A stretch of 64,000 nt of DNA from Podarcis filfolensis. Lineage: Eukaryota. A program made the position numbers and the translations under genes. This document shows positions 23,466 through 60,699 of the stretch, piece by piece. Below the pieces are notes generated by a model. The model was not told the origin of the DNA. It saw only the letters and a list, made by a program, of their open reading frames with translations, and did not search any database. The stretch lies in the NCBI GenBank assembly GCA_964270895.1, contig OZ185441.1; one strand, written 5' to 3'. Numbering within the stretch: the first letter of the stretch is position 1; each line of letters begins with the position of its first letter.

Positions 23466-23499
23466 TTCAGTTCCCCATGTGGACTCTGAGTGTCACTGT
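23466..23499 (+). promoter_or_regulatory. Pcdh CSE / CTCF site, CACT variant (exon 4)
   Basis: CAGTTCC...GACTCTGAGTGTCACTG; CACT at 23494, 242 nt before ATG. Confidence 0.8.
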
Positions 23500-23735
23500 T
23501 GGACAACATGGGAGCAGCCATGGCTCAGCATTTCCGAGACTCTTGGAGCAGTCTCTCTCTCTCAACACTTCAGCTGAGCAGAAAGGAAAAGCTTTTATTT
23601 TAAAAGCTGCTCAAGAAAGGAAAGCTCTCAGTTTCCCAAGGATCAGCTGAAAAGAAGAATATTTCTATTATTTCAAATAAGTGTACTGGGAGTCTTGAAA
23701 ACTGTACTGAAAGAAGGAAGAAATCAGGAAAGGCA

Positions 23736-26165
23736 ATGGATGTGGTGGAAGTAAAGCAGGCAGAGAGAACAAGGAAGATCACCAGGAGGCAAGTACTGTT
23801 TCTGTTCATATTCTGGTCTGTGTTCTGCTGCCAGGTAGTGTCTGAGCAGGTTCAGTATTCGGTTCCAGAGGAAGCAGAGCAGGGCTCCTTTGTGGGGAAC
23901 CTTGCTAAAGATCTGGGGTTGGATCTCAGAGAGCTGTCAAAGCGCAAGCTTGGTATTTCTTCAGAAAAGCAATTCTTTGATCTGAATGAACAAAATGGCA
24001 ACCTGTATGTGAATGAGAGAATAGACCGGGAAGAGATTTGTCGGGAATCATCCACTTGTGTCCTCAAATTAGAAGTTGTGGCACACAATCCTTTGAATAT
24101 TTTCCACATAAATATTTTTATCCAGGACATTAATGACAATGCCCCATATTTCCGGAATGAAAATGTTGAGCTTAAATTGAGTGAGTCTACTCTGCCAGGA
24201 ACTCGATTTGCTCTTGGAAATGCTGAAGATAAAGATATTGGAACAAATTCCCTGCAGAATTATCAATTGAGCTCAACTCCATATTTCAAGTTGGAAATTC
24301 AAAACAGCAATAATGGTGGCAAATATGCAGAATTAGTATTGCAGAAACAACTGGACAGGGAAAAGGAACAAATGCATAACATGGTCCTTACAGCCATGGA
24401 TGGTGGAGAACCTCCAAAAACCGGAACAGTCAAAATATTGGTAAGAGTTATTGATGCTAATGACAATGCTCCTGTTTTCACCCAGGCAAACTATAAAGTG
24501 AGCCTGAAGGAGAGTGCACCCAAAGGAACCTCTGTGCTTCAAGTCAAAGCATCTGACAGTGATGAAGGGTCAAATGCTGAGATCACTTATACATTCAGTG
24601 ACATCCCAGAAACAGCTGAGCAGAAGTTTCATCTGGATCCCAGAGATGGAACAATTACACTTATAGAAAGTGTTGATTTTGAGGACAGACAAAAATATGT
24701 GATGATAATTAAGGCAAGTGATGGAGGAGGCTTGGCGGCACATTGCAATGTGGAGATTGAGGTTCTTGATGAGAATGACAATGCTCCAGATGTGATCCTT
24801 ACATCCGTGTCCAGCCCAGTTCCTGAAGATGTCACATCTGGAGCTGTGATTGCTCTCATTAAAGTTCAGGACAGGGATTCTGGGGATAATGGAGAAATCA
24901 TCTGTCACCTGAAGGAACTTGTACCTTTCCTGATAGTCTCATCTTCGGATAATTACTTCAAGCTCCTCATAGATGGTGCCCTTGACAGAGAAAGGACTCC
25001 CGAGTATAATATTACAATCACAGCCACAGACAAAGGCACACCTCCACTCTCCACACACAAAACCATATCAATACAGATCTCAGATATCAATGATAACCCA
25101 CCAGCCTTTGAAAAATTTTCCTATACTGCCTACATTCCAGAAAACAACCCATCTGGAGCTTCAATTTTCCACATCAAGGCCTCTGACCCAGATCTGGATC
25201 GCAATGCCCGAATCACTTACTCCATCCTTAACAGCAACATCAAGGACCTGCCTCTCTCCTCCTATGTCTCCATTAACTCTGAGACTGGAATCATCTATGC
25301 CCAACGCTCCTTTGACTATGAGCAATTCAGGGAGTTTCAGATTCAAGTGAAGGCCCAAGATGGAGGTTCTCCACCACTCAATAGCAGTGCCACAGTGACA
25401 GTATGTGTTTTGGATCGAAATGATAACGCTCCGCAGATCCTGTACCCCTCACAATCAACAGAGGGCTCACCTTTCTTTGAGATGGTGCCTCGGTCAGCTG
25501 AGTCGGGTTATCTGGTGACGAAGGTGGTGGCCGTGGACTTTGATTCGGGACACAATGCCTGGCTCTCCTTCCATCTCCTGCAGGCCACAGAGCCCTCACT
25601 CTTCAGCATTGGCTCCCACACAGGAGAGGTGCAAACAGTCCGAGCATTACTTGAGAGAGATGCAGTGAAGCAGAGGCTGGTCATCCTGGTGAAGGACAAT
25701 GGGCATCCTCCTCTCTCAGCCACCACAACGTTGAGCCTGGTGTTTGCTGAGAACTTCCAGGAGGCTCTTCCAGAAATGAACTCCCAACCAAATGACTCAG
25801 AGTATCAGTCTGATCTACAGTTTTATTTGGTATTGGCCTTGACCTTGGTGTCCTTTCTGTTCCTGGTGACGGTGATACTGACCATTCTGATAAAGCTTCG
25901 AAGGTCAAGGAACCCCACTTTCCTTCAGTGCTTTATTCCTGACCCCCATTCAAAGGCTGGTGCCATATTCCCACCCAATTATGAGGACGGAACTTTGCCT
26001 TATTCCTACCAGGTCTGTCTGTCCTCTGAATCCAGGAGGAATGAGCTGACATTCCTGCAGCCCACTGTCCAAATAGCAGAGAACATCCTTTGCAATGGCA
26101 ACTCTGACATTTCTTTGGTGGTCAGTGGAGGTAATTTAATTTCTGAAAAGGAAAATGACAGCACG
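23736..26165 (+). CDS. PCDHGB: Protocadherin gamma B-like variable exon 4 (810 codons; unspliced stop 26192)
   Basis: 818-aa ORF, six EC repeats, TM and the gB-type tail [17 protein letters not shown] (cf. mammalian gB PPNYSEGTLPYSYNLC); ACG|GTGAGT donor at 26165/26166. Confidence 0.93.
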
Positions 26166-27232
26166 GTGAGTTATATTGCATGTTCCTTATAGGCAATTTG
26201 GTGTTATCACTTGTTTGAGAGTTTAATTGTAAACAGTGGATGTTATCAAACTGGCATCCTAGAGAATTCAGACAATGTCATCAGGGAAATAGGTAGGGAG
26301 TAGTATTGAGCTGCTACTGCTGTAGAGCAAGCTAATTGGACTTTCCAGCAGCTATTGAGGGGCAGCATAGCAGGATGGCGGAGGCTGTGTCAGAATTGTC
26401 CAGGTACAAATCTGCATGGTAACTCGGTGTCGTGCTAAGATCACAGAGTGGTGCAGCATGGCTGAGTGGAGAGAATGATATTTTCTTCTTCTTCTTATCT
26501 TTGCAGTACAAATGCAATTGAATATGTAGCTATTTTCACATTCTGTCCTTTAAGAAATTTACAAGAAGAAATACCAAAAAGTCTTTCATAGAATATTCTT
26601 TAAATAAGTTGGTAAATTTCTTAGTAATTGGTAAAGTTTTTCAACTGAATTTTAGGAAGTGTTTGTGGAGCTTTTAATGGGTTGGATTATTTAATGAGAG
26701 TAAAGGATTAATTAATCACTAAACATTTTAGAATAACTTGATTTGGTTCTCATATATACAAATAATCTTACATAGCATTTGGATATTGTGTTCCTGTCAC
26801 AGACAGAGCTTGGGATTTGGGTCTGATGAGAATAGCACAACATATTAAGTGGTGGAGCTCTGATGGAAGCTATCAGTTGTACAAGCATTTCTTAGGTCCT
26901 GTGACTGCATGCTGTTTGTAGAATGAAAAATGCTCATGTACAACCTGTGTAGAAGAGTGACATCAAAAGGAAGTTTCTCTTGGCATGATTTCTAGAGATG
27001 TTGTATACCACTCTTTGTGGGGGGGTAGTGGTGGGGGGACTATAGAATTATTTTAAATAAAAAATTAAATAATATGCACATATTCCCCTGCTTCCAAGAT
27101 ATGTATATACTGGAAATGGTCCCTGAATTGACAAATACCCTAAACCAAACATGACCGTATCATGAACCCGAAACGATCCCCTGCCCCCCCCCCGCCGGCT
27201 CCTGCCCTGGCCAGGTCCTGTATTCTCTTATA

Positions 27233-27438
27233 CAGTGGTACCTCGGGTTACATACGCTTCAGGTTACATACGCTTCAGGTTACACACTCCGCTAACCCAG
27301 AAATAGTGCTTCAGGTTAAGAACTTTGCTTCAGGATAAGAACAGAAATTGGGCTCCGGCGCGGGAGGCCCCATTAGCTAAAGTGGTGATTCAGGTTAAGA
27401 ACAGTTTCAGGTTAAGAACAGACCTCCAGAACGAATTA
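27233..27438. mobile_element. Tc1/mariner-pogo (Tigger-like) MITE, right end deleted
   Basis: TA|CAGTGGTACC start; the full copy is at the paralogous position 51290-51531. Confidence 0.75.
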
Positions 27439-28744
27439 TTGAGTGACAGCTACCAATGGTAGATGCCCTTTTAACTCTTTGGCATGGAATGTTTTCTTAT
27501 GGAGAGTCAATCTGGCCAGGACATACACCTGCACATCCTGTAATTGCTGTACTTTAAAGCTGGGTCATGTTCACCACCAGTGTATATTCCATTAGGAAAG
27601 ATGAAGACTAATGTTAAAAGAACATTTGTTGGCATTATCTAGTGGATAATTCAGTGTCTTGTCCCTCCTGCTAATGGCCAAATTCAGTTTTAGCAGTTTA
27701 ATCTTGTAGAACAAGAAGTACAACATCAAGTTATCCATCCACAGTAGTGGTGTTTGTGATAAGCTGGAGCTGTGGATGAGGCAGCAGTGTGGCTGGGTCT
27801 GTATGCTTCTGTCAGCAACCAATCTGGCATTCCTGCTGGTGCACCTGCATGGTCCTAACCTTGCCGTGGCTGAAGCCCAGCCCTTTCCAGATAAGCAGTG
27901 GCAATAAATTACAGAGAATGTGGCCATTTTACTTCTTTGCTCTGTGCAGTAATACCTAGTGTTCAAGGCACTTCACATATATTGCTGTGCAACTCTTACA
28001 ATAACCTAGAAAAGTAGATCAATGTTATGATATTGGGGTAGGGGGAGAGGCTGCATTCAAATTTGTGGGGAATATTGCATTAGTTATTTTTCCTGCGTTT
28101 AATGGCAGCATTTCTGTCCTGTTCTTTTCACTGTGGTACCTGCTGTGCTAAGGAACTGTGGTTTTTGACTGATATACCAGCAAGTTGGGCTGAATTTCAT
28201 GCACACCAGTGTATTTGGTATCACACAACAATGAATGTCATTGGCTAATGCCGCAACTCTGTCAGCCTTTCTGCACATGGATGCCTCTGTTTCCCCATGA
28301 AAACAGCAGGAAAGAACTGTGTGTCAGCATATCAGTTTCCTCACTTTACAACTACAAACATTGCACTGACACAAAGAAAATAGGAAGTACCAGAGGCTTA
28401 CTATTCTTTTTTCTGCATCCAAAACGAATCTTTTGAATATCCAGCAAACAACATTGCTGAGAAAGTTCAATATTTCAGAATTCAATTCATTCCAGAATTT
28501 CCAGTAATGGGGTAGAGAAGGAACCCTAAACACACTTGTCTTTCCTGCTCCTTTTCAGTTTGTTTACTACAACAGAAGTTGTCACTCTTCTTTATCCTTA
28601 GTGGGTAAATTTGAAGGAAAAAATAAAGAATATAGAAAAATATACATAGTTATCCTAGCTATATCTTCATTTATAATATTTATAATACTATAATATAATA
28701 GTACAGTGAAATGGTGTTTATTTAATTTTCAAAACTGAGCTTTT

Positions 28745-28778
28745 TGCACTTTGGGCTTGATCCTCTGGGTGTCACTGT
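28745..28778 (+). promoter_or_regulatory. Pcdh CSE / CTCF site, CACT variant (exon 5)
   Basis: TGCACTTT...TCCTCTGGGTGTCACTG; CACT at 28773, 197 nt before ATG. Confidence 0.8.
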
Positions 28779-28969
28779 TCACCAGAATGGAGGAGAAATG
28801 AGAAATCCTGCCCAATTGAAGTTGCCTTTCCGTTAAACACAAACACAAAATATCTGAAGGAACAAGCTGTTTGTCAGCGTAAAGAAGAAACAGAAGTGCA
28901 TTTTTCTTTAAAAAATTGGATACAGCATCATTTGAATCAGAATTGAAGGGCCTTTAACCTGCTGCAAGG

Positions 28970-31393
28970 ATGGAAGGAATTCAGAGGCTGTGGAATTGCA
29001 GAAAAGGAATCTTCCAGTGCCTTTTCATGATGCTTTCTTGGAAGGCAGTTTCTGGGCAGATCCACTACTCCATTCCAGAAGAGATGCACAAAGGCTCTTC
29101 TGTGGGGAATATTGCAAAGGACCTGGGAATGGATGGCAAGCTGCTCCCAAACCATGGACTGCGCATTGTTTCTCCTGTAGGTATGATTCAGTACTTTTCT
29201 TTGAATGCCAACAATGGCCATTTGCAGATATCTGAGAGAATAGATAGAGAGGAAATTTGTGGAGAGGCAGAGAAATGTATGTTGAAGTTTCAGGTTCTTG
29301 TTGAAAGCAAACTGAAGCTTTATGGAATTGAAGTGGAAATTACAGATATAAATGACAATGCTCCCCACTTCCCTCTATGGGAACAGGAGCTGGAAATCAG
29401 TGAGGCATCTACACCTGGATTCCAGGTTCCTCTTCCTGAAGCTCAAGATCCAGATTGGGGGATAAATTCCGTGCAGAGCTATCAACTCACAGGCAGTAGC
29501 CATTTTGCTTTGCATGTGCAAACAGAAGAAAATGGTGCCAGACTTGTTGAACTTGTGTTGGAAAAGTCACTGGACAGAGAGGAACAATCAGCTTACGATT
29601 TGCTCCTCACAGCTACTGATGGAGGTGATCCTATCAAATCTGGCACATTACAAATCCACATCGCCGTCCTTGATGCAAATGACAATGCACCAGTTTTCAG
29701 CCAACCTCTCTATGAAGTGAGTGTCAATGAGAATATTCCCAAGTGGTCCACACTCTTGACAGTGAGAGCAACTGATAAGGATGAAGGAATCAATGGAGAC
29801 ATTAAATATTTTTTCCAAAAAATCACAAAGAAAGACTCCCAAATGTTTCTGTTAAATTCCACAACAGGTGAAATCATCCTTACTGGGAATCTTGATTATG
29901 AGGAATCATCTTTATATGTATTTGAGATACAAGCCAAAGATGGAGGAGGCCTGAGTGACAGATCAAAAGTTGTGATATCAGTTACGGATCTGAATGACAA
30001 TGCACCCGAATTATCAATTACCTTTGCCACCAACACCATACTTGAAAGTTCACCATCCCAAACGGTAATTGCCATTTTAAATGTCCAAGACCGAGATTCA
30101 GGAATCAATGGGGAAATCACATGTTCAATCCCTAGCAATCTCCCTTTTCAGCTAAAGAAGTCCATGGATAACTTTTACAGTTTGGTAACTGATGGTGCCC
30201 TTGACAGGGAACAGGTGTCAGTCTTCAATATTACTGTCACTGTTACTGACCATGGAGTCCCCCCTCTTTCTACAGTCACAGTTATCACACTTCATGTTTT
30301 AGACACAAATGACAACCCACCCCTCTTTGAAAAAACAGACTATACTTTCTATTTTGTTGAGAATAACCAAAGAGGAGCGATGGTCTCTTCCTTAAGAGCA
30401 AATGATCTTGACTGGGAAGAAAATGCCAGAATAACATATTCCATCACTGATGACCAAAGAAGTGACTCCCGCCTCTCCTCCTACCTCTCCATTAACTCTG
30501 AGACGGGGGTTATATATGCTCTGACCTCCTTTGATTATGAAGAGTTTCGAGACATTCGGTTCCGTGTAAAGGCCCAGGATGGAGGTTCTCCACCACTCAG
30601 CTCCAACGTCTCAGTGACTCTCTTCATCCTGGACCAGAATGACAACGCTCCCCAAATTCTATACCCTTCCCCTCCCACTGATGGCTCCACAGGGATAGAG
30701 CTGGCCCCTCGCTCCTCTGAGCCAGGCTACCTGGTCACTAAGGTGGTGGCCGTGGATGCAGACTCTGGCCAGAATGCCTGGCTCTCCTACCAGCTGATCA
30801 AGGCCACCGAGCCAGGGCTCTTCACTCTGGGGCTCCACACGGGAGAGATCAGGACGGCCCGCTTCTTTCTGGAGAAAGATGCCCTCAAGCAAAGCCTGGT
30901 GGTTTTAGTCAAGGACAATGGGCAGCCACCTCTCTCTGCTTCAGCCACTCTGACTGTGGTGCTGGCTGACACCATCCCTGCAGTCCTCTCAGACCTGAGC
31001 AGCATCTCAGCTCCTGTAGATCCTCCATCTGACCTCACCTTCTACCTGGTCCTTGCAGTGGCTTTTGTCTCCTGCTTGTTCTTCACTTTCCTCCTTGTGT
31101 TGCTGGCCATCAAGTTGCACAGGTGGAGAAATTCTCAGCTGCTTGAATCGGGGAGTGTGAATTTCAGTGGTGCTCCTATCTCACAGTTTGTGGGGATTGA
31201 TGGAGTCCGAGCATTTCTGCACTCCTACTGCCATGATGTTTCTCTGACTTCAGGCTCTAAGAAAAGCCAGTTTAGTATTTCCAAGGCAAATTATTCCAAT
31301 ACTCTGAGCAATCAACAGACTTGTGAGGTAAAGAATCCTATCATATCTGGTGAAGATTTAAATTTTAATGATGGTGATCCAGTCATAGTCCAG
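28970..31393 (+). CDS. PCDHGA: Protocadherin gamma A-like variable exon 5 (808 codons; unspliced stop 31402)
   Basis: 810-aa ORF, six EC repeats, gA tail; CAG|GTGAGT donor at 31393/31394. Confidence 0.95.
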
Positions 31394-32277
31394 GTGAGTT
31401 AATCTGGTTATCTTTTGATTTTATATGAACTTACTCATCTTGGTGAATTTTACATCTATCTGCTATCTGCAATACTATACTGGAAGGTATTATTATACAT
31501 AGCATTTTATTTGATATTTATTAGTACCACCACAGTTGTTTTTTCAGTATTTGTGTTTCATGCTATAACACAGACAAATTATTTCACACAATTACATTTC
31601 TTATCTTTACTGTTATATTGCCCAGCAGTAAAATGACTCTCTGATCCTCATTGCCAAGTATATATTATGGTATGTAAAAATATAATTGATGCTATGCAGC
31701 ATTTTAATGAACATCAATATTATGGGCACCATCCATAGGAGAGATAAGCACATGCTTATGTTCCTTCTCCAGAAATCACTGGGTCTCAGAAATGCTTTTC
31801 TTTGGCCAAAATGTACCATATAGTTGTAGGATATTTTGGAATAACATGTGCATAGTAAGAATAATCATGTGTTATAGTTATGCACTTGTTTGACTGATAT
31901 TCTAGCATCTGCTGAATCGAGAAAAATGAATATAACATACTAACTGAATATGAATTAAGATAGATTATTTAGCGCATTTGTGCAATTAGTTTTAGGCTGA
32001 ATCTTCTGTCTTTTCCATTAGTAAATGTCATGTGGATTCTCATGTTCTCTGCCGGGATGGGTAGGGCAGAAGGAAAATCAAAGATGTAAACTGGCAGAAG
32101 AAAACACTCCCATATGCAAGGATTAAAGCAAATCTTCCATATGATGGACCTCTACCACTTTCCAAACCTATAAAAGGAATTAGATCAAAGACAGAGAGGT
32201 GTGTGGATAGGAAAAACTTTCACATAAGACTAGGCAGAGACAGCTGTTTCTTGTAATGGCTTTGAAACGCTAAGCGC

Positions 32278-42517: not shown

Positions 42518-44947
42518 ATGGATGTGATGGAAGTAAAGCAGGCAGAGAGAACAAGGAAGATCATGAGGAGGCAAGTACTGTTTCTGATCATATTCTGGTC
42601 TGTGTTCTGCTGCCAGGTGGTGTCTGAGAAGGTTCAGTATTCAGTTCCAGAGGAAGCAGAGCAGGGCTCCTTTGTGGGGAATCTTGCTAAAGACCTGGGG
42701 TTGGATGTCAGAGAGCTGTCAAAGCGCAAGCTTGGTATTTCTTCAGAAAAGAAATTCTTTGATCTGAATGAACAAAATGGCAACCTGTATGTGAATGAGA
42801 GGATAGACCGGGAACAGATTTGTGGGGAATCATCTACTTGTGTCCTTAAATTAGAAGTTGTGGCACACAATCCTTTGAATATTTTCCATGTAAATATTTT
42901 TATTCAGGACATTAATGACAATGCCCCACATTTCCAGAATGAAAATATTGAGCTTAAATTTAGTGAATCTACTCTGCCAGGAACTAAATTTGCTCTTGGA
43001 AATGCTGAAGATGATGATATCGGAATGAACTCCCTCCAGAATTATCAGTTGAGCTCAACTCCATATTTCAAACTAGAAATTCAAGCTGGCGATGATGGTT
43101 CCAAATATGCAGAATTAATATTACAGAAACAACTGGACAGGGAAAAGGAACAGATGCACCACATGGTCCTAACAGCCATGGATGGTGGAGAACCTCCAAA
43201 AACCGGAACAGCCAAAATATTGGTAACAGTTATTGATATTAATGACAATGCCCCTGTTTTCACCCAGACAAACTATAAAGTGAGCCTGAAGGAGAGTGCA
43301 CCCAAAGGAACTTCTGTGCTTCAAGTCAAAGCATCTGACAGTGATGAAGGGTCAAATGCTGAGATCACTTATACTTTCAGTGACATCCCAAAAACAGCCA
43401 AACAGAAGTTTCATCTGGATCCCAGAGACGGAACAGTTACACTTATAGAAAGTGTTGATTTTGAGGACAGACAAAAATATGTTATGAAAATTCAGGCAAG
43501 TGATGGAGGAGGATTGGCGGCACATTGCAATGTGGAGATTGAGGTTCTTGATGAGAATGACAATGCTCCAGATGTGATCCTTACATCCGTGTCCAGCCCA
43601 GTTCCTGAAGATGTCACATCTGGAGCTGTGATTGCTCTCATTAAAGTTCAGGACAGGGATTCTGGGGATAATGGAGAAATCATCTGTCACCTGAAGGAAC
43701 TTGTACCTTTCCTGATAGTCTCATCTTCGGATAATTACTTCAAGCTCCTCATAGATGGTGCCCTTGACAGAGAAAGGACTCCTGAGTATAATATTACAAT
43801 CACAGCCACAGACAAAGGCACACCTCCACTCTCCACACACAAAACTATATCAATACAGATCTCAGATATCAATGATAACCCACCAGCCTTTGAAAAATCT
43901 TCCTACACTGCCTACATTCCAGAGAACAACCCATCTGGAGCTTCAATTTTCCACATCAAGGCCTCTGACCCAGATCTGGATCGCAATGCCAGAATCACTT
44001 ACGCCATCCTTAACAGCAACATCAAGGATCTGCCTCTTTCCTCCTATGTCTCCATTAACTCTGAGACTGGAATCATCTATGCCCAACGCTCCTTTGACTA
44101 TGAGCAATTCAGGGAGTTTCAGATTCAAGTGAAGGCCCAAGATGGAGGTTCTCCACCACTCAATAGCAGTGCCACAGTGACAGTATGTGTTTTGGATCGA
44201 AATGATAACGCTCCGCAGATCCTGTACCCCTCACAATCAACAGAGAGCTCACCTTTCTTTGAGATGGTGCCTCGGTCAGCTGAGTCGGGTTATCTGGTGA
44301 CGAAGGTGGTGGCCGTGGACTCTGATTCGGGACACAATGCCTGGCTCTCCTTCCATCTCCTGCAGGCCACAGAGCCCTCACTCTTCAGCATTGGCTCCCA
44401 CACAGGAGAGGTGCAAACAGTCCGAGCATTACTTGAGAGAGATGCAGTGAAGCAGAGGCTGGTCATCCTGGTGAAGGACAATGGGCATCCTCCTCTCTCA
44501 GCCACCACAACGTTGAGCCTGGTGTTTGCTGAGAACTTCCAGGAGGCTCTTCCAGAAATGAACTCCCAACCAAATGACTCAGAGTATCAGTCTGATCTAC
44601 AGTTTTATTTGGTATTGGCCTTGACCTTGGTGTCTTTTCTGTTCTTGGTGACAGTGATTCTGACCATTCTGATGAAGCTTCGAAGGTCAAGGAACCCCAC
44701 TTTCCTTCAGTGCTTTATTCCTGACCCCCACTCAAAGGCTGGTGCCATATTCCCACCCAATTATGAGGACGGAACTTTGCCTTATTCCTATCAGGTCTGT
44801 CTGTCCTCTGAATCCAGGAGGAATGAGCTGACATTCCTGCAGCCCACTGTCCAAATAGCAGAGAACATCCTTTGCAATGGCAACTCTGACATTTCTTTGA
44901 TGGTCAGTGGAGGTAATTTAAATTCTGAAAAGGAAAATGACAGCATG
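42518..44947 (+). CDS. PCDHGB: Protocadherin gamma B-like variable exon 7 (810 codons; unspliced stop 44986)
   Basis: The ORF track starts at TTG 42476, but the paralogous ATG is at 42518; gB tail; ATG|GTGAGT donor at 44947/44948. Confidence 0.93.
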
Positions 44948-46039
44948 GTGAGTTATATTGCATTTTGTATGTGTGTGTGGAATTAGGTGTGTTATCACTT
45001 GTTTGAGAGTTTAATTGTATACAGTGGATGTTATCAGACTGGCATCTGAGACAATTCATGCCATGTTACCAGGAAGGTAGGTAGGGAGTAATACTGAGCT
45101 GCTACTGCTGCAGAGCAGCCTAATGGGATGCATTTTTCAGCAGTTGTTGAGGGAGATAACTGCAAATTGTCAAAACCTCAGTCTGAATTATCTAGATGCC
45201 TATCTTCATGCTGACTTAGGGTAATGATCTGGGACCACAGCAATGCATGTTTTAGTGGAGACAGTGCTAAATTGTTCTCTTTCTTTCTTTCTTTCTTTGC
45301 AGCATGACTAAAATTGAATATGTAGCTATTTTAATGTTCTCTCTTTAAGAATATACAGTATATGCAAGAACAAACACAAAAACATCCTACATAGTATACG
45401 CTTCAAGAAGTTTGCAATTTTTTAAGTTATTGGCAAAATTCTCCTTATTATCAAACTAGATATTGGGAAGTTTGTGGAGAGCTTTTTATGTGTTATGGGG
45501 AAGGAAATAGCGGATTGAACATCTTTTGTTGGCAGTCTGCCCGCAGAGAGTATTACATGGTGATTGATAATAGCCAGACATAAGTCTTGGTTCCCATATT
45601 CATTTCGGGGGAAAAGAGTGAACAAGAGATTTATCTCTGGTGCTTTGAAAAAGCTGTTTTCTGTGTCAAGAGACCAAGAAGCAGTCAGCTCCTAGGAACT
45701 CGGATGGGGGTTAAGCGACTTGAGAGCTGAGGAATTTACATCTTGTCCTAAAGCCATGTAAGAGCCATGATGGGTATGGGATCTGCAAAAGTCTCCCTTT
45801 CCTAATTATATTTGGGACAGTTATAATTTATAACTGAGGGAGATTTGTCCAGTTTTAGCAATGGAAATCTGTATTTTTGTATTTTTTAGATTGAGAGTAT
45901 ATAAATGTTCTACATCGTTAAACTTTTATATTATTAAAAATGAATAAAAATAATATTTTTAAAATGACAGCCATAATTTAAAGCACACAGAAAGTTAAAA
46001 TCACAACAGAATAGATTAATACAAATTAAAGCAAATTAA

Positions 46040-47794
46040 AAATGCAAGCAATCGTATGTAAGATTGATTGCATTATGCTCCTTATACCTTGGAACCTTTA
46101 CTGTTGGAAAAAAACAGCAACACACTAATTCTTTGGAAGGGGTGGGGTGTTTCTAACCCAGTGAGATTTCCAATGTATGGTGGGGGTAGAATTTTGAATC
46201 CCAGAAAATATATGTGTCTGTGGTGTCAGAAGAAGAGTGCTTGACAATGTCCAAACATCCCAAGCTGGACAACACTTATTTGTGGGATGTGTTTCTGACC
46301 CCATTAAGAAACTCACAAGAAAACTGTCCTTGGTTAGAGAGATGTCCCCAAACAACATTAAATGGTTTGTGCCAAGTTAGTGACACAGCTGTAAGTGGTA
46401 GGGGCTGAACTTTGGAGATATTGTAGGGGTGACCATTTGTGACAATGTCCTGGAAGTACGTTCATTGCAGAATCAAAACTGCACTGGAGCGTGTGGGGTG
46501 GCAATGCTTTTATTCACACAAAATTGTATGATGGTTAAAGAGCAACTGGAAATGATTTAATATTGGGAACACATGGGAATAAATGGTGCTAGAAATAGTT
46601 GCATTGCATTATTGTAAATACAAGTGGTAAAATATTTTGATCACATTAATCAAATGCACATTGGTTAGTTTGGTCTTTCAGTATTTTATTTCTTTACAGA
46701 AACTTTTAAAATGTAATTATGCAAAGTATAGAGATATTAATGCTATGTTTAAACTGGATGAAAGACAGCAAATAACATAATAATGCATTACATGTTATCT
46801 ATTTTATAAAGAGTGCAGCTAGCTTTAGTCCAGGTCCTATGGTAAGATTTTAAATATAAGTTCTCCCATCTTTTTTAATCACTTTAATTCAGTGAGGACC
46901 CAGTTTTCTTTGAATTAGTTTCAAACATAAAATGGGGTTCATCAGTACCGTTAGCTAAACCTCCCTGCCATTTCTTCCCCATTTCAAGTAAAAAAAATCA
47001 CCTTTGAAAAGGTGTGAGGTGCTGGTGGGAACTGTCAATGGACAGAGGTAATACAGTCCTAACCTTGAACCAGAAATGATGTTCCTGAACATGCACAGAA
47101 GTGGAATTTCCTGCCAGAGAGGATGTAAAGTGTAGTTCCCTCTGCCTCCTGATCCAATAAAGGAGACATTGACAAACCTTGTGTACCCTGACAAGGAATT
47201 ACACTCCTTAAATGACCTAGAAGACCACAATTTCTTTAGAAGCCTCTGGAAACAAAGCTTCTATGTCTGATGAGCCCTCCTCACCAACAATCATCCCCTC
47301 CTCTACTATTCCTATTGTTTTCTTGTGTTTTTTCCCCACTTGTTTTTAAAGAAAGAAAATAAAGCAATGATGCTGAATGGTGAGGGACTGGGAAGCGAAG
47401 AGGATGCACACAAGTGATGGAGAAGAAAATTGTTTCTGATTGCATTTAGAGGTGAACATGTATTACAAGCAATTCCCTACTTAAGAGATAAAATTCCATG
47501 TAGAATTATAGAAATAGTAAAAGCAGTTCACCGTATGGACTCAGAGTGTCACTGTTGGACAACGTGGGAGCAGCCATGGCTCAGCATTTCTGAGACTCTT
47601 GGAGCAGTCTCTCTCTCTCTTAACACTTCAGCTGAGCAGAAAGGAAAAGCTTTTATTTTAAAAGCTGCGCAAGAAAGGAAAGCTCTCAGTTTCCCAAAGA
47701 TCAGCTCAAAAGAACAGTATTTCTGTTATCTCACATAAGTGTACTGGGAGTCTTGAAAACTGAAGTGAAAGAGGAGGAGAAATCAGAAACAACA
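46040..47794 (+). repeat. Duplicate of the gB7 upstream region (40520-42517)
   Basis: Collinear high similarity, lacking the 41393-41652 MITE. Confidence 0.85.
47522..47555 (+). promoter_or_regulatory. Pcdh CSE / CTCF site, CACT variant (exon 8)
   Basis: GCAGTTCA...GACTCAGAGTGTCACTG; CACT at 47550, 245 nt before ATG. Confidence 0.8.
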
Positions 47795-50224
47795 ATGGAT
47801 GTGATGGAAATAAAGCAGGCAGAGAGAACAAGGAAGATCATCAGGTGGCAAGTACTGTTTCTGTTCATATTCTGGTCTGTGTTCTTCTGCCAGGTGGTGT
47901 CTGAGCAGGTTCAGTATTCAGTTCCAGAGGAAGCAGAGCAGGGCTCCTTTGTGGGGAACCTTGCTAAAGATCTGGGGTTGGATGTCAGAGAGCTGTCAAA
48001 ACGCAAGCTTGGTATTTCGTCAGAAAAGCAATTCTTTGATCTGAATGAACAAAATGGCTACCTATATGTGAATGAGAGGATAGACCGGGAAGAGATCTGT
48101 GGGGAATCATCCACTTGTGTCCTCAAATTAGAAGTTGTGGCACACAATCCTTTGAATATTTTCCACGTAAATATTTTTATCCAGGACATCAATGATAATG
48201 CCCCACATTTCCAAAATGAAAATATTGAGCTTGAATTGAGTGAGTCTACTCTGCCAGGAACTAGATTTGCTCTTGGAAATGCTGAAGATGATGATATTGG
48301 AATAAACTCCCTCCAGAATTATCAATTGAGCTCCACTCCATATTTCAAACTAGAAATTCAAGCTGGCAATGATGGTGGCAAATATGCAGAATTAATATTG
48401 CAGAAACAATTGGACAGGGAAAAGGAACAGATGCACCACATGGTCCTTACAGCCATGGATGGTGGAGAACCTCCAAAAACCGGAACAGCCAAAATATTGG
48501 TAACAGTTATTGATATTAATGACAATGCTCCTGTTTTCACCCAGACAATCTATAAAGTGAGCCTGAAGGAGAGTGCACCCAAAGGAACCTCTGTGCTTCA
48601 AGTCAAAGCATCTGACAGTGACGAAGGGTCAAGTGCTGAGATCACTTATACTTTCAGTGATATCCCAAAAACAGCCAAGCAGAAGTTTCATCTCGATCCC
48701 AGAGATGGAACAATTACACTTATAGAAAGTGTTGATTTTGAGGACAGACAAAAATATGTGATGATAATTAAGGCAAGTGATGGAGGAGGCTTGGCAGCAC
48801 ATTGCAATGTGGAGATTGAGGTTCTTGATGAGAATGACAATGCCCCAGATGTGATCCTTACATCCGTGTCCAGCCCAGTTCCGGAAGATGTCACATCTGG
48901 AGCTGTGATTGCTCTCATTAAAGTTCAGGACAGGGATTCTGGGGATAATGGAGAAGTCACCTGTCACCTGAAGGAACTTGTACCTTTCCTGATAGTCTCA
49001 TCTTCGGATAATTATTTCAAGCTCCTCATAGATGGTGCCCTTGACAGAGAAAGGACTCATGAGTATAATATTACAATCACAGCCACAGACAAAGGCACAC
49101 CTCCACTCTCCACACACAAATCCATATCAATACAGATCTCAGATATCAATGATAACCCACCAGCCTTTGACAAATCTTCCTACACTGCTTACGTTCCAGA
49201 AAACAACCCATCTGGAGCTTCAATTTTCCATGTCAAGGCCTCTGACCCAGATCTGGATCGCAATGCCAGAATCACTTACTCCATCCTTCACAGCAACATC
49301 AAGGACCTGCCTCTTTCCTCCTATGTCTCCATTAACTCTGAGACTGGGATCATCTATGCCCAACGCTCCTTTGACTATGAGCAATTCAGGGAGTTTCAGG
49401 TTCAAGTGAAGGCCCAAGATGGAGGTTCTCCACCACTCAATAGCAGTGCCACAGTGACAGTATGTGTTTTGGATCGAAATGATAACGCTCCGCAGATCCT
49501 GTACCCCTCACAATCAACAGAGGGCTCACCTTTCTTTGAGATGGTGCCTCGGTCAGCTGAGTCGGGTTATCTGGTGACGAAGGTGGTGGCCGTGGACTCT
49601 GATTCAGGACACAATGCCTGGCTCTCCTTCCATCTCCTGCAGGCCACAGAGCCCTCACTCTTCAGCATTGGCTCCCACACAGGAGAGGTGCAAACAGTCC
49701 GAGCATTACTTGAGAGAGACGCAGTGAAGCAGAGGCTGGTCATCCTGGTGAAGGACAATGGGCATCCTCCTCTCTCAGCCACCACAACTTTGAGCCTGGT
49801 GTTTGCTGAGAACTTCCAGGAGGCTCTTCCAGAAATGAACTCCCAACCAAATGACTCAGAATATCAGTCTGATCTACAGTTTTATTTGGTATTGGCCTTG
49901 ACCTTGGTGTCCTTCCTGTTCCTGGTGACGGTGATTCTGACCATTCTGATGAAGCTTCGAAGGTCAAGGAACCCCACTTTCCTTCAGTGCTTTATTCCTG
50001 ACCCCCATTCAAAGGCTGGTGCCATATTCCCACCCAATTATGAGGATGGAACTTTGCCTTATTCCTACCAGGTCTGTCTGTCCTCTGAATCCCGGAGAAA
50101 TGAGTTGACTTTCCTGCAGCCCACTGTCCAAATAGCAGAGAACATCCTTTGCAATGGCAACTCTGACATTTCTTTGATGGTTAGTGGAGGCAATTTAATT
50201 TCTGAAAAGGAAAATGACAGCACG
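47795..50224 (+). CDS. PCDHGB: Protocadherin gamma B-like variable exon 8 (810 codons; unspliced stop 50251)
   Basis: The ORF track starts at TTG 47753; paralogous ATG at 47795; gB tail; ACG|GTGAGT donor at 50224/50225. Confidence 0.93.
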
Positions 50225-51289
50225 GTGAGTTATATTGCATGTTCCTTATAGGGAATTTGGTGTTATCACTTGTTTGAGAGTTTAATTGTAAACAGTGGAT
50301 GTTATCAAACTGGCATCCCTGAGAATTCAGACCATGTCATCAGGGAAGTAGGTAGGGAGTAGTATTGAGCTGCTACTGCTGTAGAGCAAGCTAATTGGAC
50401 CTTCCAGCAGCTATTGAGGGGCAGAATAGCAGGATGGCGGAGGCTCTGTCAGAATTGTCCAGGTACAAATCTGCATGGTAACTCGGTGTTGTGCTAAGAT
50501 CACAGAGTGGTGCAGCATGGCTGAGTGGAAAGAATGATATTTTCTTCTTCTTCTTATCTTTGCAGTACAAATGCAATTGAATATGTAGCTATTTTCACAT
50601 TCTGTCCTTTAAGAAATTTACAAGAAGAAATACCAAAAAGTCTTTCATAGAATATTCTTTAAATAAGTTGGTAAATTTTTTAGTAATTGGTAAAATTTTT
50701 CAACTGAATTTTAGGAAGTGTTTGTGGAGCTTTTTATGGGTTGGATTATTTAATGAGAGTAAAGGATTAATTAATCACTAAACGTTTTAGAATAACTTGA
50801 TTTGGTTCTCATATATACAAATAATCTTACATAGCATTTGGATATTGTGTTCCTGTCACAGATAGAGCTTGGGATTTGGGTCTGATGAGAATAGCACAAC
50901 ATATTAAGTGGTGGAGCTTTGATGGAAGCTTATCAGTTGTACAAGCATTTCTTAGGTCCTGTGACTGCATGCTGTTTGTAGAATGAAAAATGCTCATGTA
51001 CAACCTGTGTAGAAGAGTGACATCAAAAGGGAGTTTCTCTTGGCATGATTTCTAGAGATGTTGTATACCACTCTTTGTGGGGGGTAGTGGTGGGGGGACT
51101 ATAGAATTATTTTAAATAAAAAATTAAATAATATGCACATATCCCCCCGCTTCCAAGATATGTATATACTGGAAATGGTCCCTGAATTGACAAATACCCT
51201 AAACCAAACATGACCATATCATGAACCCGAAACTATCCCCTGCCCCCCCCCCCGGCTCCTGCCCTGGCCAGGTCCTTTATTCTCTTATA

Positions 51290-51531
51290 CAGTGGTACCT
51301 TGGGTTACATACGCTTCAGGTTACATACGCTTCAGGTTACACACTCCGCTAACCCAGAAATAGTGCTTCAGGTTAAGAACTTTGCTTCAGGATAAGAACA
51401 GAAATTGGGCTCCGGCGGCTCGGCAGCATCGGGAGGCCCCATTAGCTAAAGTGGTGATTCAGGTTAAGAACAGTTTCAGGTTAAGAACGGACCTCCAGAA
51501 CGAATTAAGTACTTGACCTGAGGTACCACTG
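51290..51531. mobile_element. Tc1/mariner-pogo (Tigger-like) MITE
   Basis: TA|CAGTGGTACC...GGTACCACTG|TA. Confidence 0.85.
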
Positions 51532-52129
51532 TACATTACTGATGTCCAGTGTGGATGCAATCGCAAAGTACTGGCATTCATTTCCTTGGCATTTGCATTA
51601 GAGATTATGACAAATTGTAACAGTTGTAGTGAACACTTTGTATGTAAGGATGTGTGGATGTGGAGCATGTGGTTAGTATTTCTACTTATACCATCTCTAG
51701 TCATGCTTCCATACTGCAGAAATATAGGGGACAAATGACTATTGAGTCACAGCTACCAATGGTAGATGCCCTTTTAACTCTTTGGCATGGAATGTTTTCT
51801 TATGGAGAGTCAATCTGGCCAGGACATACACCTGCACATCCTGTAATTGCTGTACTTTAAAGCTGGGTCATGTTCACCACCAGTGTATATTCCATTAGGA
51901 AAGATGAAGACTAATGTTAAAAGAACATTTGTTGGCATTATCTAGTGGATAATTCAGTGTCTTGTCCCTCCTGCTAATGGCCAAATTCAGTTTTAGCAGT
52001 TTAATCTTGTAGAACAAGAAGCACAACATCAAGCTCTCCAACGAAGATGGCCGAAAACCACCTACCTTTGCTGTTTAACAAGCGCTCACATGCTAGTTTT
52101 TAATAAAGCTCTCTTCTGAGTTTGACATC

Positions 52130-52400
52130 CATAGAATCATAGAATCATAGAGTTGGAAGAGACCACAAGGGCCATCGAGTCCAACCCCCTGCCAAGCAGG
52201 AAACACCATCAGAGCACTCCTGACGTATGGTTGTCAAGCCTCTGCTTAAAGACCTCCAAAGAAGGAGACTCCACCACACTCCTTGGCAGCAAATTCCACT
52301 GTCCAACAGCTCTTACTGTCAGGAAGTTCTTCCTAATGTTTAGGTGGAATCCTCTTTCTTGTAGTTTGGATCCATTGCTCCGTGTCCGCTTCTCTGGAGC
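52130..52400 (-). mobile_element. CR1 LINE 3' fragment
   Basis: CATAGAATCATAGAATCATAG is the reverse of the CR1 (ATTCTATG)n tail; possible CATCC TSD. Confidence 0.8.
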
Positions 52401-53467
52401 AGCATCCAGTTTTCACATGTGTGCTTCTAAGCTACCATTGAATGTTATCCATCCACAGTAGTGATGTTTGTGATAAGCTGGAGCTGTGGATGAGGCAGTG
52501 GTGTGGCTGGGTCTGTATGCTTCTGTCAGCAACCAATCTGGCATTCCTACTGGTGCACCTGCATGGCCCTAACCTTGCCGTGGCTGAAGCCCAGCCCTTT
52601 CCAGATAAGCAGTGGCAATAAATTACAGAGAATGTAGCCATTTTACTTATTTGCTCTGTGCAGTAATACCTAGTGTTAAGAATGTTCAAGGCGCTTCACA
52701 TATAGTGGTGTGTAACTCTTACAATAACCCAGAAAAGTAGATCAATGTTATGATATTGGGGTGGGGGGAGAGGCTGCATTCAATTTGTGGGGAATATTGA
52801 ATTGGTTATTTTTCCTGCGTTTAATGGCAGCATTTCTGTCCTGTTCTTTTCACTGTGGTACCTGCTGTGCTAAGGAACTGTGGTTTTTGACTGATATACC
52901 ACCAAGTTGTGCTGAATTTCATGCACACCAGCGTATTTGGTGTGACACAACAATGAATGTCATTGGCTAATGCCACAACTCTGTCAGCCTTTCTGCACAT
53001 GGATGCCTCTGTTTCCCCAGGAAAACAGCAGGAAAGAACTGTGTGTCAGCATATCAGTTTCCTCACTTTACAACTATAAATATTACACTGACACAAAGAA
53101 AATAGGAAGTACCAGAGGCTTACTATTCTTTTTTCTGCATCCAAAACGAATCTTTTGAATGTCCAGCAAACAACATTGCTGAGAAAGTTCAATATTTCAG
53201 AATTAAATTCATTCCAGAATTTCCAGTAATGGGGTAGGGAAGGAACCCTAAACACACTTGTCTTTCCTGCTCCTTTTCAGTTTGTTTACTACAACAGAAG
53301 TTGTCACTCTTCTTTATCCTTATTGGGTAAATTTGAAGGAAAATAATAAAGAATATAGAAAAATATACATAGTTATCCTAGCTATGTCTTCATTTATAAT
53401 ATTTATAATATTATAATAAACTAGTACAGTGAAATGGTGTTTATTTAATTTTCAAAAGTGAAGTTTT

Positions 53468-53501
53468 TGCAGTTTGGGCTTGATCCTCTGGGTGTCACTG
53501 T
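53468..53501 (+). promoter_or_regulatory. Pcdh CSE / CTCF site, CACT variant (exon 9)
   Basis: TGCAGTTT...TCCTCTGGGTGTCACTG; CACT at 53496, 199 nt before ATG. Confidence 0.8.
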
Positions 53502-53694
53502 TCACCAGAATGGAGCAGAAATGTGAAATCCTGCCCAATTGAAGTTGCCTTTCCGTTAAACACAAACACAAAATATCTGAAGGAACAAGCTGCTTGTCAG
53601 TGCAAAGAAGAAATGGAAGTGCATTTTCCTTAGAAAAAAATTGGATACAGCATCTTTTGAACGAAAATCTAAGGGTCTTTAACCTGCTGCCAGG

Positions 53695-56097
53695 ATGGAA
53701 GGAATTCAGAGGCTGTGGAATTGCAGAAAAGGAATCTTCCAGTGCCTTTTCATTATGTTTTCTTGGAAGGCAGTTTCTGGGCAGATCCACTATTCCATTC
53801 CAGAAGAGATGCACAAAGGCTCTTCTGTGGGGAATATTGCAAAGGACCTGGGAATGGATGGCAAGCAGCTCCCAAACCATGGACTGCGCATTGTTTACCC
53901 TGTAGGTATGATTCAGTACTTTTCTTTGAATGCCAACAATGGCCATTTGCAGATATCTGAGAGAATAGATAGAGAGGAAATTTGCAGAGAGGCAGAGAAA
54001 TGTATGTTGAAGTTTCAGGTTCTTGTTGAAAGCAAACTGAAGCTTTATGGAATTGAAGTGGAAATTACAGATATAAATGATAATGCTCCCCACTTCCCTC
54101 TATGGGAACAGGAGCTGGAAATCAGTGAGGCATCTACACCTGGATTCCAGGTTCCTCTTCCCAAAGCTCAAGATCCAGATTGGGGGATAAATTCAGTGCA
54201 GAGCTATCAACTCACAGGCAGTAGCAGTTTTGCTTTGCATGTGCAAACAAAAGAAAATGGTGCCAGACTTGTTGAACTTGTGTTGGAAAAGTCACTGGAC
54301 AGAGAGGAACAATCAGCTTACGATTTGCTTCTCACAGCTACTGATGGAGGTGATCCTATCAGGTCTGGCACATTACAAATCCACATTGTTGTTATTGATG
54401 CAAATGACAATGCACCAGTTTTCAGCCAACCTCTCTATGAAGTGAGTATCAATGAGAATATTCCCAAGTGGTCCATACTTTTGACAGTGAGAGCAACTGA
54501 TATGGATGAAGGAATCAATGGAGACATTAAATACTCTTTCCAACAAATTACAAAGCGCGACTCCCAAATGTTTCTGTTAAATTCCACAACAGGTGAAATC
54601 ATCCTTATTGGGAATCTTGATTATGAGGAATCATCTTTATATGCATTTGAGATACAAGCCAAAGATGGAGGAAGGCTGAGTGACAGATCAAAAGTTGTGA
54701 TATCTGTTACAGATCTGAATGACAATGCACCTGAATTATCAGTTAACTTTGCCACCAACACCATACTTGAAAGTTCACCATCCCAAACGGTAATTGCCAT
54801 TTTAAATGTCCAAGACCGAGATTCAGGAATCAATGGGGAAATCACATGTTCAATCCCTAGCAACCTCCCTTTCCAGCTAAAGAAGTCCATGGATAACTTT
54901 TACAGTTTGGTGACTGATGGTGCCCTTGACAGGGAACAGGTGTCAGTCTTCAATATTACTGTCACTGTTACTGACCATGGAGTCCCCCCTCTTTCTGCAG
55001 TCACAGTTATCACACTTCATGTTTTAGACACAAATGACAACCCACCCCTCTTTGAAAAAACAGACTATACTTTCTATTTTGTTGAGAATAACCAAAGAGG
55101 AGCCATGGTCTCTTCCTTAAGAGCAAATGATCTTGACTGGGAAGAAAATGCCAGAATAACATATTCCATCACTGATGACCAAAGAAGTGACTCCCGCCTC
55201 TCCTCCTACCTCTCCATTAACTCTGAGACGGGGGTTATATATGCTCTGACCTCCTTTGATTATGAAGAGTTTCGAGACATTCGGTTCCGTGTAAAGGCCC
55301 AGGATGGAGGTTCTCCACCACTCAGCTCCAACGTCTCAGTGACTCTCTTCATCCTGGACCAGAATGACAATGCTCCCCAAATCCTGTACCCCTCCCCTCC
55401 CACTGATGGCTCCACTGGGATAGAGCTGGCCCCTCGCTCTTCTGAGCCAGGCTACCTGGTCACTAAGGTGGTGGCCGTGGATGCGGACTCTGGCCAGAAT
55501 GCCTGGCTCTCCTACCAGCTGATCAAGGCCACCGAGCCAGGGCTCTTCACTCTGGGGCTCCACACGGGAGAGATCAGGACAGCCCGCTTCTTTCTGGAGA
55601 AAGATGCCTTCAAGCAAAGCCTGGTAGTTTTAGTGAAGGACAATGGGCAGCCACCTCTCTCTGCTTCAGCCACTCTGACTGTGGTCCTGGCTGACGCCAT
55701 CCCTGCAATTCTCTCAGACCTGAGCAGCATCTCAGCTCCTGTAGAGCCTCCGTCAGACCTCACTTTCTACCTGGTCCTTGCAGTGGCTTTTGTCTCCTGC
55801 TTGTTCCTCATCTTCCTCCTTGTGTTACTGGCCATCAAGTTGCACAGATGGAGAAATTCTCAGCTGCTTGAGTCGGGGACTGTGAATTTCAGTGGTGCTC
55901 CTATCTCACAGTTTGTGGGGATTGACGGAGTCCGAGCATTTCTGCACTCCTACTGCCAGGAGGTTTCTCTCACTACAGACTCTAGAAAGGCAAATTATTC
56001 CAATACTCTGAGCAATAAAGAAGCTTGTGAGGCAAAGGATCCAATCCTACCTGGTGAAGATTTAAACTTGAACAATGAAGGCTTAATCGTAGTCCAG
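53695..56097 (+). CDS. PCDHGA: Protocadherin gamma A-like variable exon 9, chimeric (801 codons; unspliced stop 56115)
   Basis: 806-aa ORF; EC1-5 near-identical to exon 5, EC6/tail near-identical to exon 6; CAG|GTGAGC donor at 56097/56098. Confidence 0.95.
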
Positions 56098-57948
56098 GTG
56101 AGCAAACAATTTTAGATTAACATGCTTTTTTGTTGTTTTATTAATATCAGAATATATTTCCCATTTGCCTCTGCTTTCTCATTATATTCAGAACTATGTC
56201 AGTCTTCTTTCTATTACCTTCAGCTCCCCCTTCTTTTAGTTATTACTTTATATGCGATCCTTCTGTGAAGTATCTTCTTTCAACAAATCTTCATCTTGAT
56301 GCATCAGATGATCTGTCTTTGTCTCTTACTTTCGACTGCTGGTGGAGGCTCACAAAACCTTGTGCACATCTATAAAAAAACATAGTTCACTACATTATTG
56401 AAACTATCATGTATAGGAGAAGGCTAGGCTCATCCTATTTTCATGTGCAGTAGGTGAGTTCCTGTGAGATTGATTCTAAATTGTTTTAGCTTTGTATGTT
56501 GTATTTGGCTTTTATTTCATATTTTTATTACACTTCCAAATAGTGGGTGGTTTAAAAAATCTGTATCAATAAATAAGTATATAAATGCGAGCCCTCACCT
56601 GCCTTGGTACTGATAAGTTTTAGTCATGAAATGAAAACTAGGGCCTAGTATCCTATGACAAGTTCTCATTCCCATCTTTCAACCAATACTGTAACTTCTT
56701 TCCACTACATACCCAACTGTACACCAATAAGCTGATACTGAGATTCTCATTGCCACAAGACTTATTTTTTTAAGAAAAGTAATAATGAATTTACTTAACT
56801 CATTTATTGGGTGAGATATTTTGGCTGTTTGTATATTTTAGTTCGATAAAATGAGGAGAGGGGAGGGGACTCTGGAAATATATTTACAAGCAATTGTATT
56901 GTAAGATTGGTTACATAATGCTCCTTTGTAACTTGCAACCTTCACCCGCTATTGAACTACAGCAGCAACAAACAAATGGTTTGGGGGGGGGTTGTATTTT
57001 CTACTCTATTGAGATTTCTTGTGTAAGGTAGAGGTAGAATTTTGAACCCCAGATAAGGTGTCATGTGTTGCCTTCTCTCTGTAAAATGAATGAAAACAGC
57101 TTCAGCCGACGGTGTGTTCTTCTAGGTAGTTCCACACTCCTACAATGGGTACATCAATGGAAAAGTTTATTTACTCCTTTGTAATGTAACTGTAAGCTGG
57201 TTTGATTCCAGAGCTTTTTGGTGAAATTTTGCTTGCATTTTTCTATTTTAAAAAATGCTATCATTGCTGGAGTTGTAAACACCCTACAATGGCAAAAATT
57301 GATGCACTTTATGAGGGTTTTTTTTTTGTTCCTGTAAGGAAACAATGAATGGTAACGTGCTGAAATCTGGGTGAGTTGTTTGGGTGACCATATCTGGCAA
57401 TGTCTTTGAAAGACTATCCTGAAGTTCTACTAATGTGTGAATTGGACAATGCAAAGTATGCTGGGAGGATGCTTGGATTCCCACAAAATTGTTTGATGTT
57501 TAAGAGAAAGTGGGAATTATTTAGGGATTACAGTATTTGAACACTAGACAAAAATAGTGCTAAAAAAAGTTGCTTTTCCTTATTGTAAATACAAGTGGCA
57601 TATTCTCTTGATCACATTAATAAAATGCACACATCACTATGTGGGTCAACCTAAAATTATCACAAGCTGAACCTCTGACAGGAATACGTATTAAAAATTC
57701 ACTTGTGATAATTTCCTAATATTATTTAGATTTTTTTAATGCACATTAAACATGGAAGAAAGAAATTTGGAACTCTGGTCTCATTGACCTGCATTCTGAA
57801 AAGAGTTCTTAATGGAGTGAACAACTATAAGGTCTGATCAACAATCCATTGAGGGGGGTACAACTTGAAAACAATGGTAAAGGGATAAATTAAAAGCAGT
57901 TCTCTACATTAGAAATTATATACTATGTACCATTATTGAAATGGCAAA

Positions 57949-57982
57949 TACAGTTCCCCATGTGGACTCAGAGTGTCACTGT
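57949..57982 (+). promoter_or_regulatory. Pcdh CSE / CTCF site, CACT variant (exon 10)
   Basis: CAGTTCC...GACTCAGAGTGTCACTG; CACT at 57977, 244 nt before ATG. Confidence 0.8.
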
Positions 57983-60650: not shown

Positions 60651-60699
60651 GTGAGTTATATTTCATGTTCCTTATAGGGAATTTGGTGTTATCACTTGT

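Follow-up and report, generated by a model that had tools for sequence, protein, structure and literature searches.

In mammals, the stochastic choice among protocadherin promoters is tied to the methylation of CpG-rich promoters and to the binding of CTCF at the conserved sequence element (CSE). The mammalian CSE with its CGCT box was described by Wu et al. (2001) and is a CTCF site according to Guo (2012) and Monahan (2012), as summarised in PMC7811963 and PMC6881428. The present work describes the CSEs of a protocadherin-gamma (pcdh-gamma) cluster from the lizard Podarcis filfolensis, contained in a window of 64,000 nucleotides of contig OZ185441.1, which is the whole stretch of DNA that was analysed. 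In six of its ten promoters the box reads CACT instead of CGCT, and the comparisons presented below point to two old mutations, multiplied by duplication, as the probable source. The comparisons with mammals are drawn from the literature only.

Organization of the locus

The window holds a tandem array of ten variable exons (v1 to v10), all in the same orientation (+) and spaced by 4.5-8 kb. The three shared constant exons of the gamma cluster fall outside the window. The variable exons correspond to ten plus-strand open reading frames (ORFs) of 806-836 amino acids (aa), or 806-822 aa when counted from the first ATG. A Pfam scan of v1, v4 and v5 identified five or six Cadherin repeats, an N-terminal Cadherin_2 domain and a cytoplasmic Cadherin_C_2 domain. 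In a word-based protein search, the v4-type protein is 93-95% identical to the "protocadherin gamma-B" of Podarcis and Zootoca, and the v5-type protein is 93% identical to the "gamma-A6-like" protein of Podarcis. The top single match is a protein of Podarcis lilfordi (97.9%), and there is no full identity among the matches listed. These matches assign the window to a lacertid lizard. A run of 290 N occupies positions 12138-12427, between v2 and v3.

The box reads CGCT at four of the ten promoters. These belong to v1, a divergent exon of gamma-A-like (gA-like) type (ORF of 813 aa at 1757-4198; CSE at 1527-1543, box at 1537), and to the gA exons v2 (811 aa, 9261-11696; CSE 9043-9059, box 9053), v3 (812 aa, 17032-19470; CSE 16825-16841, box 16835) and v6 (806 aa, 37055-39475; CSE 36801-36817, box 36811). 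The remaining six promoters carry CACT. This group comprises the gamma-B (gB) exons v4 (818 aa, 23736-26192; CSE 23484-23500, box 23494), v7 (822 aa from the first ATG, 42518-44986; CSE 42263-42279, box 42273), v8 (818 aa from the first ATG, 47795-50251; CSE 47540-47556, box 47550) and v10 (818 aa, 58221-60677; CSE 57967-57983, box 57977), together with the gA exons v5 (810 aa, 28970-31402; CSE 28763-28779, box 28773) and v9 (806 aa, 53695-56115; CSE 53486-53502, box 53496). The tetranucleotides were read directly, and each CSE was assigned from its tetranucleotide, its spacing to the ATG and a 17-mer match, complemented by the gB block alignment (v4), the gA-type alignment (v5) and exon identity (v6). 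All ten tetranucleotides match those of a preliminary description of this DNA, which had listed the same four CGCT and six CACT boxes and had placed CACT at all four gB and at two gA genes. These gene classes are upheld by the exon identities, the promoter alignment and the protein matches.

The ten boxes are all embedded in the sequence GTGTC[G/A]CTG, on the plus strand and 197-245 bp 5' of the ATG of the variable exon. The 17-mer CTCNGNGTGTCRCTGTT, searched with up to two mismatches on both strands of the window, matches the ten CSEs alone, for an expectation of 0.15 in shuffled sequences. The fixed spacing of a CSE (~200 bp 5' of the ATG, in the orientation of the gene) is found at ten out of ten promoters. 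The subfamily-specific conserved flanks are also present, as gA and gB flank types in the promoter alignment and in the cross-species alignments. The CGCT box itself is present in four CSEs and replaced by CACT in six. As the remaining features of a CSE are in place, the latter are variant CSEs. An assembly artefact as the source of CACT is excluded, since the same base is found in six separate paralogues and in the orthologous promoters of an independent assembly, that of Lacerta agilis (locus L011).

Two further motifs were observed. The 9-mer GTGTCACTG occurs on the minus strand at 18685 and 38705, approximately 1650 nt into v3 and v6 and at the same coding position in both. As the match stops short of the 17-nt CSE pattern, the 9-mer is probably conserved coding sequence and no promoter element. 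The gB promoters contain a second conserved block, GGACAAC-A/G-TGGGAGCAGCC, placed at 23504-23517 in v4 and at the same offset in v7, v8 and v10. This block begins 10 nt past the box, is kept across squamates and fits the CTCF core (IUPAC code) at 10 of 14 positions, in another register than the box.

Two lineages of CACT promoters

The gB exons v4, v7, v8 and v10 share 95.6-96.9% nucleotide identity with one another, and the gA exons v5 and v9 share 95.7%. The nearest other exon of the window to v5 and v9 is v6, a CGCT exon, with 82-84% identity. The promoter alignment yields the same groups as the exons, each with its own flank type. Comparison of the window with itself aligned 23435-27438 with 47498-51507 (95.7% identity) and 27730-31398 with 52444-56102 (94.9%). 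These segments define a duplicated B-A unit of ~8 kb on the plus strand, the first copy of which (23435-31398) includes v4 and v5 and the second (47498-56102) v8 and v9, in each case with both promoters. The exons v7 and v10 are additional copies of the gB unit. The synonymous divergence (dS) is 0.08-0.11 across all the duplicated pairs, which fits a single recent burst of duplication.

Judged from the exon identities, the promoter groups and the duplication of the ~8 kb block, the six CACT boxes of the window go back to two mutational lineages, one gB and one gA. The preliminary description had argued for at least two independent losses, and the two lineages of paralogues seen in the exons, the promoter alignment and the self-comparison bear this out.

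In most gB pairs, the homology of the duplicated units starts approximately 50-90 nt upstream of the box (23435, 42190-42221, 47462-47498 and 57889-57944), which places the beginning of the duplication unit almost exactly at the CSE. The v7 and v8 units are alike for ~620 nt further upstream than the other gB pairs.

The same description had offered transfer by gene conversion as an alternative, in which one loss was passed between gB and gA promoters. Concerted evolution acts on clustered protocadherins, as seen from the paralogues, which group by species in the exon tree described below; the gB and gA CSEs also have the 11-nt sequence GTGTCACTGTT in common. Outside this 11-mer, however, the gB and gA flanks differ on both sides, and a conversion tract would have to be shorter than ~20 bp. 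In Elgaria, an adjacent B-A pair reads CGCT/CACT, so that the box states of gB and gA promoters are uncoupled. Moreover, CpG transitions are the commonest point mutation and recur at least four to five times on the exon tree. A transfer between the two subfamilies is, on this balance, very unlikely.

The box in other squamates and in a turtle

CSEs were further surveyed at ten loci from nine species, including the turtle Emys, which were fetched via single-exon gene models. The region 5' of every long ORF was scanned with a matrix derived from the window CSEs, with no base prescribed at the two box positions. Together with the window, 41 CSEs were obtained, with 24 CGCT, 16 CACT, one CAGT and no TGCT.

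The orthologous region of Lacerta agilis (L011) has CACT at three gB promoters and at the gA promoter of v5/v9 type. Since these orthologous promoters carry CACT, both CACT lineages of the window are placed before the split between L. agilis and the window species. CACT recurs in Hemicordylus, Sceloporus, Elgaria and two snakes. It is found at gB-type promoters in Hemicordylus, Sceloporus, Candoia and Thamnophis, and at one gA-type promoter each in Elgaria and Candoia. CGCT is found in Gekko, in Tiliqua and at the gB promoter of Elgaria, and it is present at three of three promoters in the turtle. In a maximum-likelihood tree built from 33 variable exons, the distribution of CACT requires five changes, at least four of which are forced by well-supported branches. 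On this tree, the same CpG-to-CpA transition has recurred in other squamate families.

Several observations were made on individual promoters. Two gA paralogues of Candoia, with branch lengths of 0.05-0.07, carry CACT (L005:3098) and CGCT (L005:23869), and by its place on the tree this pair is a recent case of the same transition in a snake. A gB-like exon located elsewhere in the cluster of Lacerta agilis (L008:9725) reads CAGT, with two changes in the box, and its CSE score is weaker. The CCAAT-bearing sequence CACCAATAAGG lies just downstream of the box in v6 and in most gA promoters. In v5 and v9 (28782-28788 and 53505-53511) and in their L. agilis orthologue (L011, ~9817-9823), it is replaced by CACCAGAATGG, which leaves this lineage with neither the box CpG nor the CCAAT motif. 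A GATCC signature common to v5/v9 and the Elgaria gA promoter was considered as proof of orthology and was downgraded, as the L. agilis orthologue reads GAGCC.

The CTCF core and the maintenance of CACT elements

The mammalian CSE is a forward CTCF site, the CGCT box of which is contacted by zinc finger 3 (ZF3) (PMC7811963). In structures of CTCF bound to DNA, C12 is read by Glu362 and G13 by Arg339 of ZF3, and positions 12-13 take either CpG or CpA (PMC11514455). The latter supports the statement of the preliminary description that the CTCF core accepts A. By analogy, the changed base of the lizard box would be core position 13, where G or A is accepted. With the box C placed at position 12, the core consensus CCASYAGRKGGCRS matches the CSEs modestly, at 8-11 of 14 positions, no better than in nearby registers. 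In the gA-type CSEs, 7-8 of the 11 upstream core positions match (p 0.038-0.008). C12 is invariant, and position 13 is G in 24 and A in 13 of 37 CSEs; the four CSEs of L011, which were added later, also have A. The CSEs sampled thus combine a C at position 12 with a purine at position 13. The C at position 12 is presumably kept by selection, because TGCT, the other product of CpG decay, was never seen.

The gB CSE is a block of ~45 nt kept from the turtle to the lacertid, upstream of which the sequences are unalignable. The G/A column of the box is the main variable column of this core block. All ORFs of the window are intact, those behind the six CACT promoters included. The ratio of nonsynonymous to synonymous divergence (dN/dS) is 0.18-0.30 among the exons behind CACT promoters, and 0.24-0.26 when v5 or v9 is compared with the CGCT exon v6. 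By these ratios, the exons behind CACT promoters are under purifying selection. The decay of a CpG is equally likely to give TpG or CpA. The independent losses of the box CpG went to CpA in five out of five cases (one-sided p = 0.03), which fits a filter that keeps C first and a purine second, as at CTCF core positions 12 and 13. Taken together, the CACT elements are predicted to be stable, working variants of the CSE and no decaying promoters.

The opposite possibility is that the change from G to A cuts the affinity for CTCF, and that the CACT promoters are weakened or decaying, with isoforms that are being lost or rarely used. G is the commoner base at the box position (24 of the 41 CSEs), the gB-type CSEs match the CTCF core poorly, and the v5/v9 lineage is additionally devoid of the CCAAT motif beside the box. 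These features have to be set against the six intact exons and their dN/dS values. Furthermore, the CACT units were recently duplicated rather than lost, and the CACT state and its flanks are conserved across the lacertids and several other families. Decay of these promoters is accordingly judged very unlikely.

CpG content and promoter methylation

The ratio of observed to expected CpG is 0.21 for the whole window. It is 0.06-0.52 in the promoters (taken from 500 bp 5' of the box as far as the ATG) and 0.19-0.29 in the exons, as in intergenic DNA. At the nine other squamate loci, it is 0.07-0.27 in the promoters (1-5 CpGs per 500 bp), 0.17-0.31 in the exons and 0.16-0.33 in intergenic DNA. 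The values of the turtle locus (L007) are 0.82 for the promoters (~20 CpGs), 0.70 for the exons and 0.48 for intergenic DNA. A CpG-rich promoter and 5' exon of the mammalian type was not found at the window promoters or at the nine other squamate loci. Likewise, no CpG island is present at the promoters or variable exons of protocadherin-gamma in any of the nine squamates sampled, the window species included. Mammalian PCDH genes are reported to have CpG islands (PMC6617643). The CpG-rich state found in the turtle and reported in mammals may therefore have been lost squamate-wide, with a single turtle locus as the outgroup.

In this CpG-poor setting, 19 of 21 squamate CGCT CSEs have no CpG other than that of the box within 30 nt on either side, and no CpG at all is present there in 8 of 12 CACT CSEs. 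Consequently, the CACT core has no CpG, and nearby CpG targets are lacking in most CACT promoters. The box CpG has nevertheless survived in ~60% of the squamate CSEs amid the general depletion, which suggests that the G is under selection, whether for its affinity or for the CpG that it forms.

These data bear on the proposal of two classes of isoforms. In this proposal, the CGCT promoters are gated by methylation of the box CpG, which blocks CTCF, whereas the CACT promoters bind CTCF and escape the gating. The solitary position of the box CpG is in its favour, and so are the squamate gamma promoters without CpG islands that could supply alternative methylation targets, the stable maintenance of CACT in particular lineages, and the retention of CGCT against an observed/expected ratio of ~0.2, a pattern compatible with selection on the CpG itself. 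The retention of G may, however, equally be due to a plain affinity preference for G over A, and some CACT promoters contain CpGs at positions -18 or +13 relative to the box.

The literature is in conflict on whether methylation of the cytosine at position 12 blocks CTCF. According to reviews of the Wu laboratory (including PMC7811963), methylation of the CGCT box precludes CTCF binding. On the other hand, biochemical and structural reports indicate that CTCF is inhibited by methylation at core position 2 only, and that methylation at position 12 is tolerated or slightly favoured. CTCF accommodates six states at positions 12-13, which are CpG, its fully methylated form, the two hemi-methylated forms, CpA and methyl-CpA (PMC11514455). 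If methylation at position 12 is tolerated at the CSE, the loss of the box CpG would alter little. In addition, CAC is the preferred context of non-CpG methylation in mammalian neurons, and non-CG methylation is also present in zebrafish brain, according to PMC7978034. The cytosine of CACT sits in this CAC context, and to call these promoters methylation-blind, as the preliminary description did, is too strong in the light of that source. Gating of one promoter class by the box CpG is for these reasons an unlikely explanation, and the "different choice logic from mammals" put forward in the same description is a hypothesis and not a finding.

A wider version of the proposal starts from the loss of the CpG islands. 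This loss would leave the CSE CpG as the last methylation target, and the CACT promoters would form a stable second class, the choice of which is independent of CpG methylation at the CTCF site. The second class would comprise all gB promoters of the window's clade and one gA lineage of the lacertids, with parallels in cordylids, iguanians, anguids and snakes. The chances of this wider version are also judged to be low. If it is true, the locus offers a natural experiment that separates CTCF binding from methylation gating in stochastic isoform choice.

Origin of the CACT boxes

The best explanation of the CACT boxes is, with good probability, that two old CpG-to-CpA transitions were spread by duplication and gave tolerated, still functional variants of the CSE. 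CACT derives from CGCT by a change of G to A within the CpG, the outcome to be expected when a methylated cytosine of the bottom strand is deaminated. In the window the transition traces to one gB lineage and one gA lineage, both of them older than the split from Lacerta agilis. Subsequently, recent tandem duplication (dS ~0.1), including that of the ~8 kb B-A block, raised the two CACT lineages to six copies. Given that CTCF core position 13 takes G or A, the CACT elements would remain working variants, and selection holding the C at position 12 would account for the absence of TGCT.

Some points weigh against this explanation. The gB-type CSEs match 5-6 of the 11 upstream core positions, which is not significant (p 0.30-0.13), and CTCF binding at the lizard CSEs is inferred from their homology with the mammalian ones. 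The retention of CGCT in ~60% of the squamate CSEs, in spite of the CpG-poor background, suggests that G is favoured at the box and that CACT may fall short of fully neutral. The clustering of paralogues by species in the exon tree, which reflects concerted evolution, blurs orthology across families, so that the count and the age of the CACT events are approximate. In particular, the present sequences do not distinguish three parallel losses from a gB CACT box that arose once, in the common ancestor of lacertids, snakes, iguanians and anguimorphs, and later reverted in Elgaria.

Comparison with known systems

The literature search yielded no publication that deals with the CSEs of squamates or with CTCF at the protocadherin loci of reptiles, and a paper on the anole protocadherin cluster is without promoter analysis. 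What is new here is a well-defined variant of a known element, the CSE, with a lineage history; the "different choice logic" is not an established finding. As the evidence stands, the CACT box is most plainly read as an ordinary tolerated variant.

Research groups disagree on whether the single CpG in the CGCT box has a causal role. Squamates, with a lone box CpG and with old, conserved CACT lineages beside CGCT neighbours, provide naturally matched promoters for testing this role. If the CACT and CGCT classes behave alike, the box CpG is dispensable for promoter choice. A difference between them would mean that a distinct regulatory logic operates outside mammals.

The lizard elements resemble the mammalian CSE in that each variable exon has one, located ~200 bp before its ATG in the orientation of the gene and with subfamily-specific flanks, and in that four of the ten have CGCT. 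Every mouse CSE is described as having CGCT in PMC6881428 and PMC7811963. The lizard locus differs from this description in having CACT at six of ten promoters. The preliminary description had noted that CACT, if common in mammalian CSEs of normal stochastic behaviour, would argue against its proposal; since these two sources describe CGCT for all mouse CSEs, CACT is not a common state in mammals. Unlike the mammalian PCDH genes with their CpG islands (PMC6617643), the lizard promoters and exons are CpG-poor. The mammalian CSE is bound by CTCF, whereas the lizard CSE is a candidate CTCF site.

Compared with ordinary CTCF sites that have CpA at core positions 12-13, the lizard box changes at the same position and to the same alternative base (PMC11514455). 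In contrast to these sites, nearly all copies of the lizard CSE are off the consensus at positions 3, 6 and 11, which makes it a non-canonical site at best.

Outside mammals, the CGCT box is absent from the alpha CSEs of zebrafish and Xenopus tropicalis, and in the Xenopus gamma cluster it is "conserved to a lesser extent" (PMC4978886). The lizard locus resembles the zebrafish and Xenopus alpha CSEs in this respect, since these too show that a CSE outside mammals may lack the CGCT box and yet retain its remaining sequence and its position (PMC4978886). However, the zebrafish and Xenopus differences concern whole subclusters and were read from sequence logos (PMC4978886), whereas in the lizard one G-to-A transition splits the promoters within a single gamma cluster. 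Unlike the zebrafish and Xenopus cases, the change in the lizard box can be traced to lineages and to duplications.

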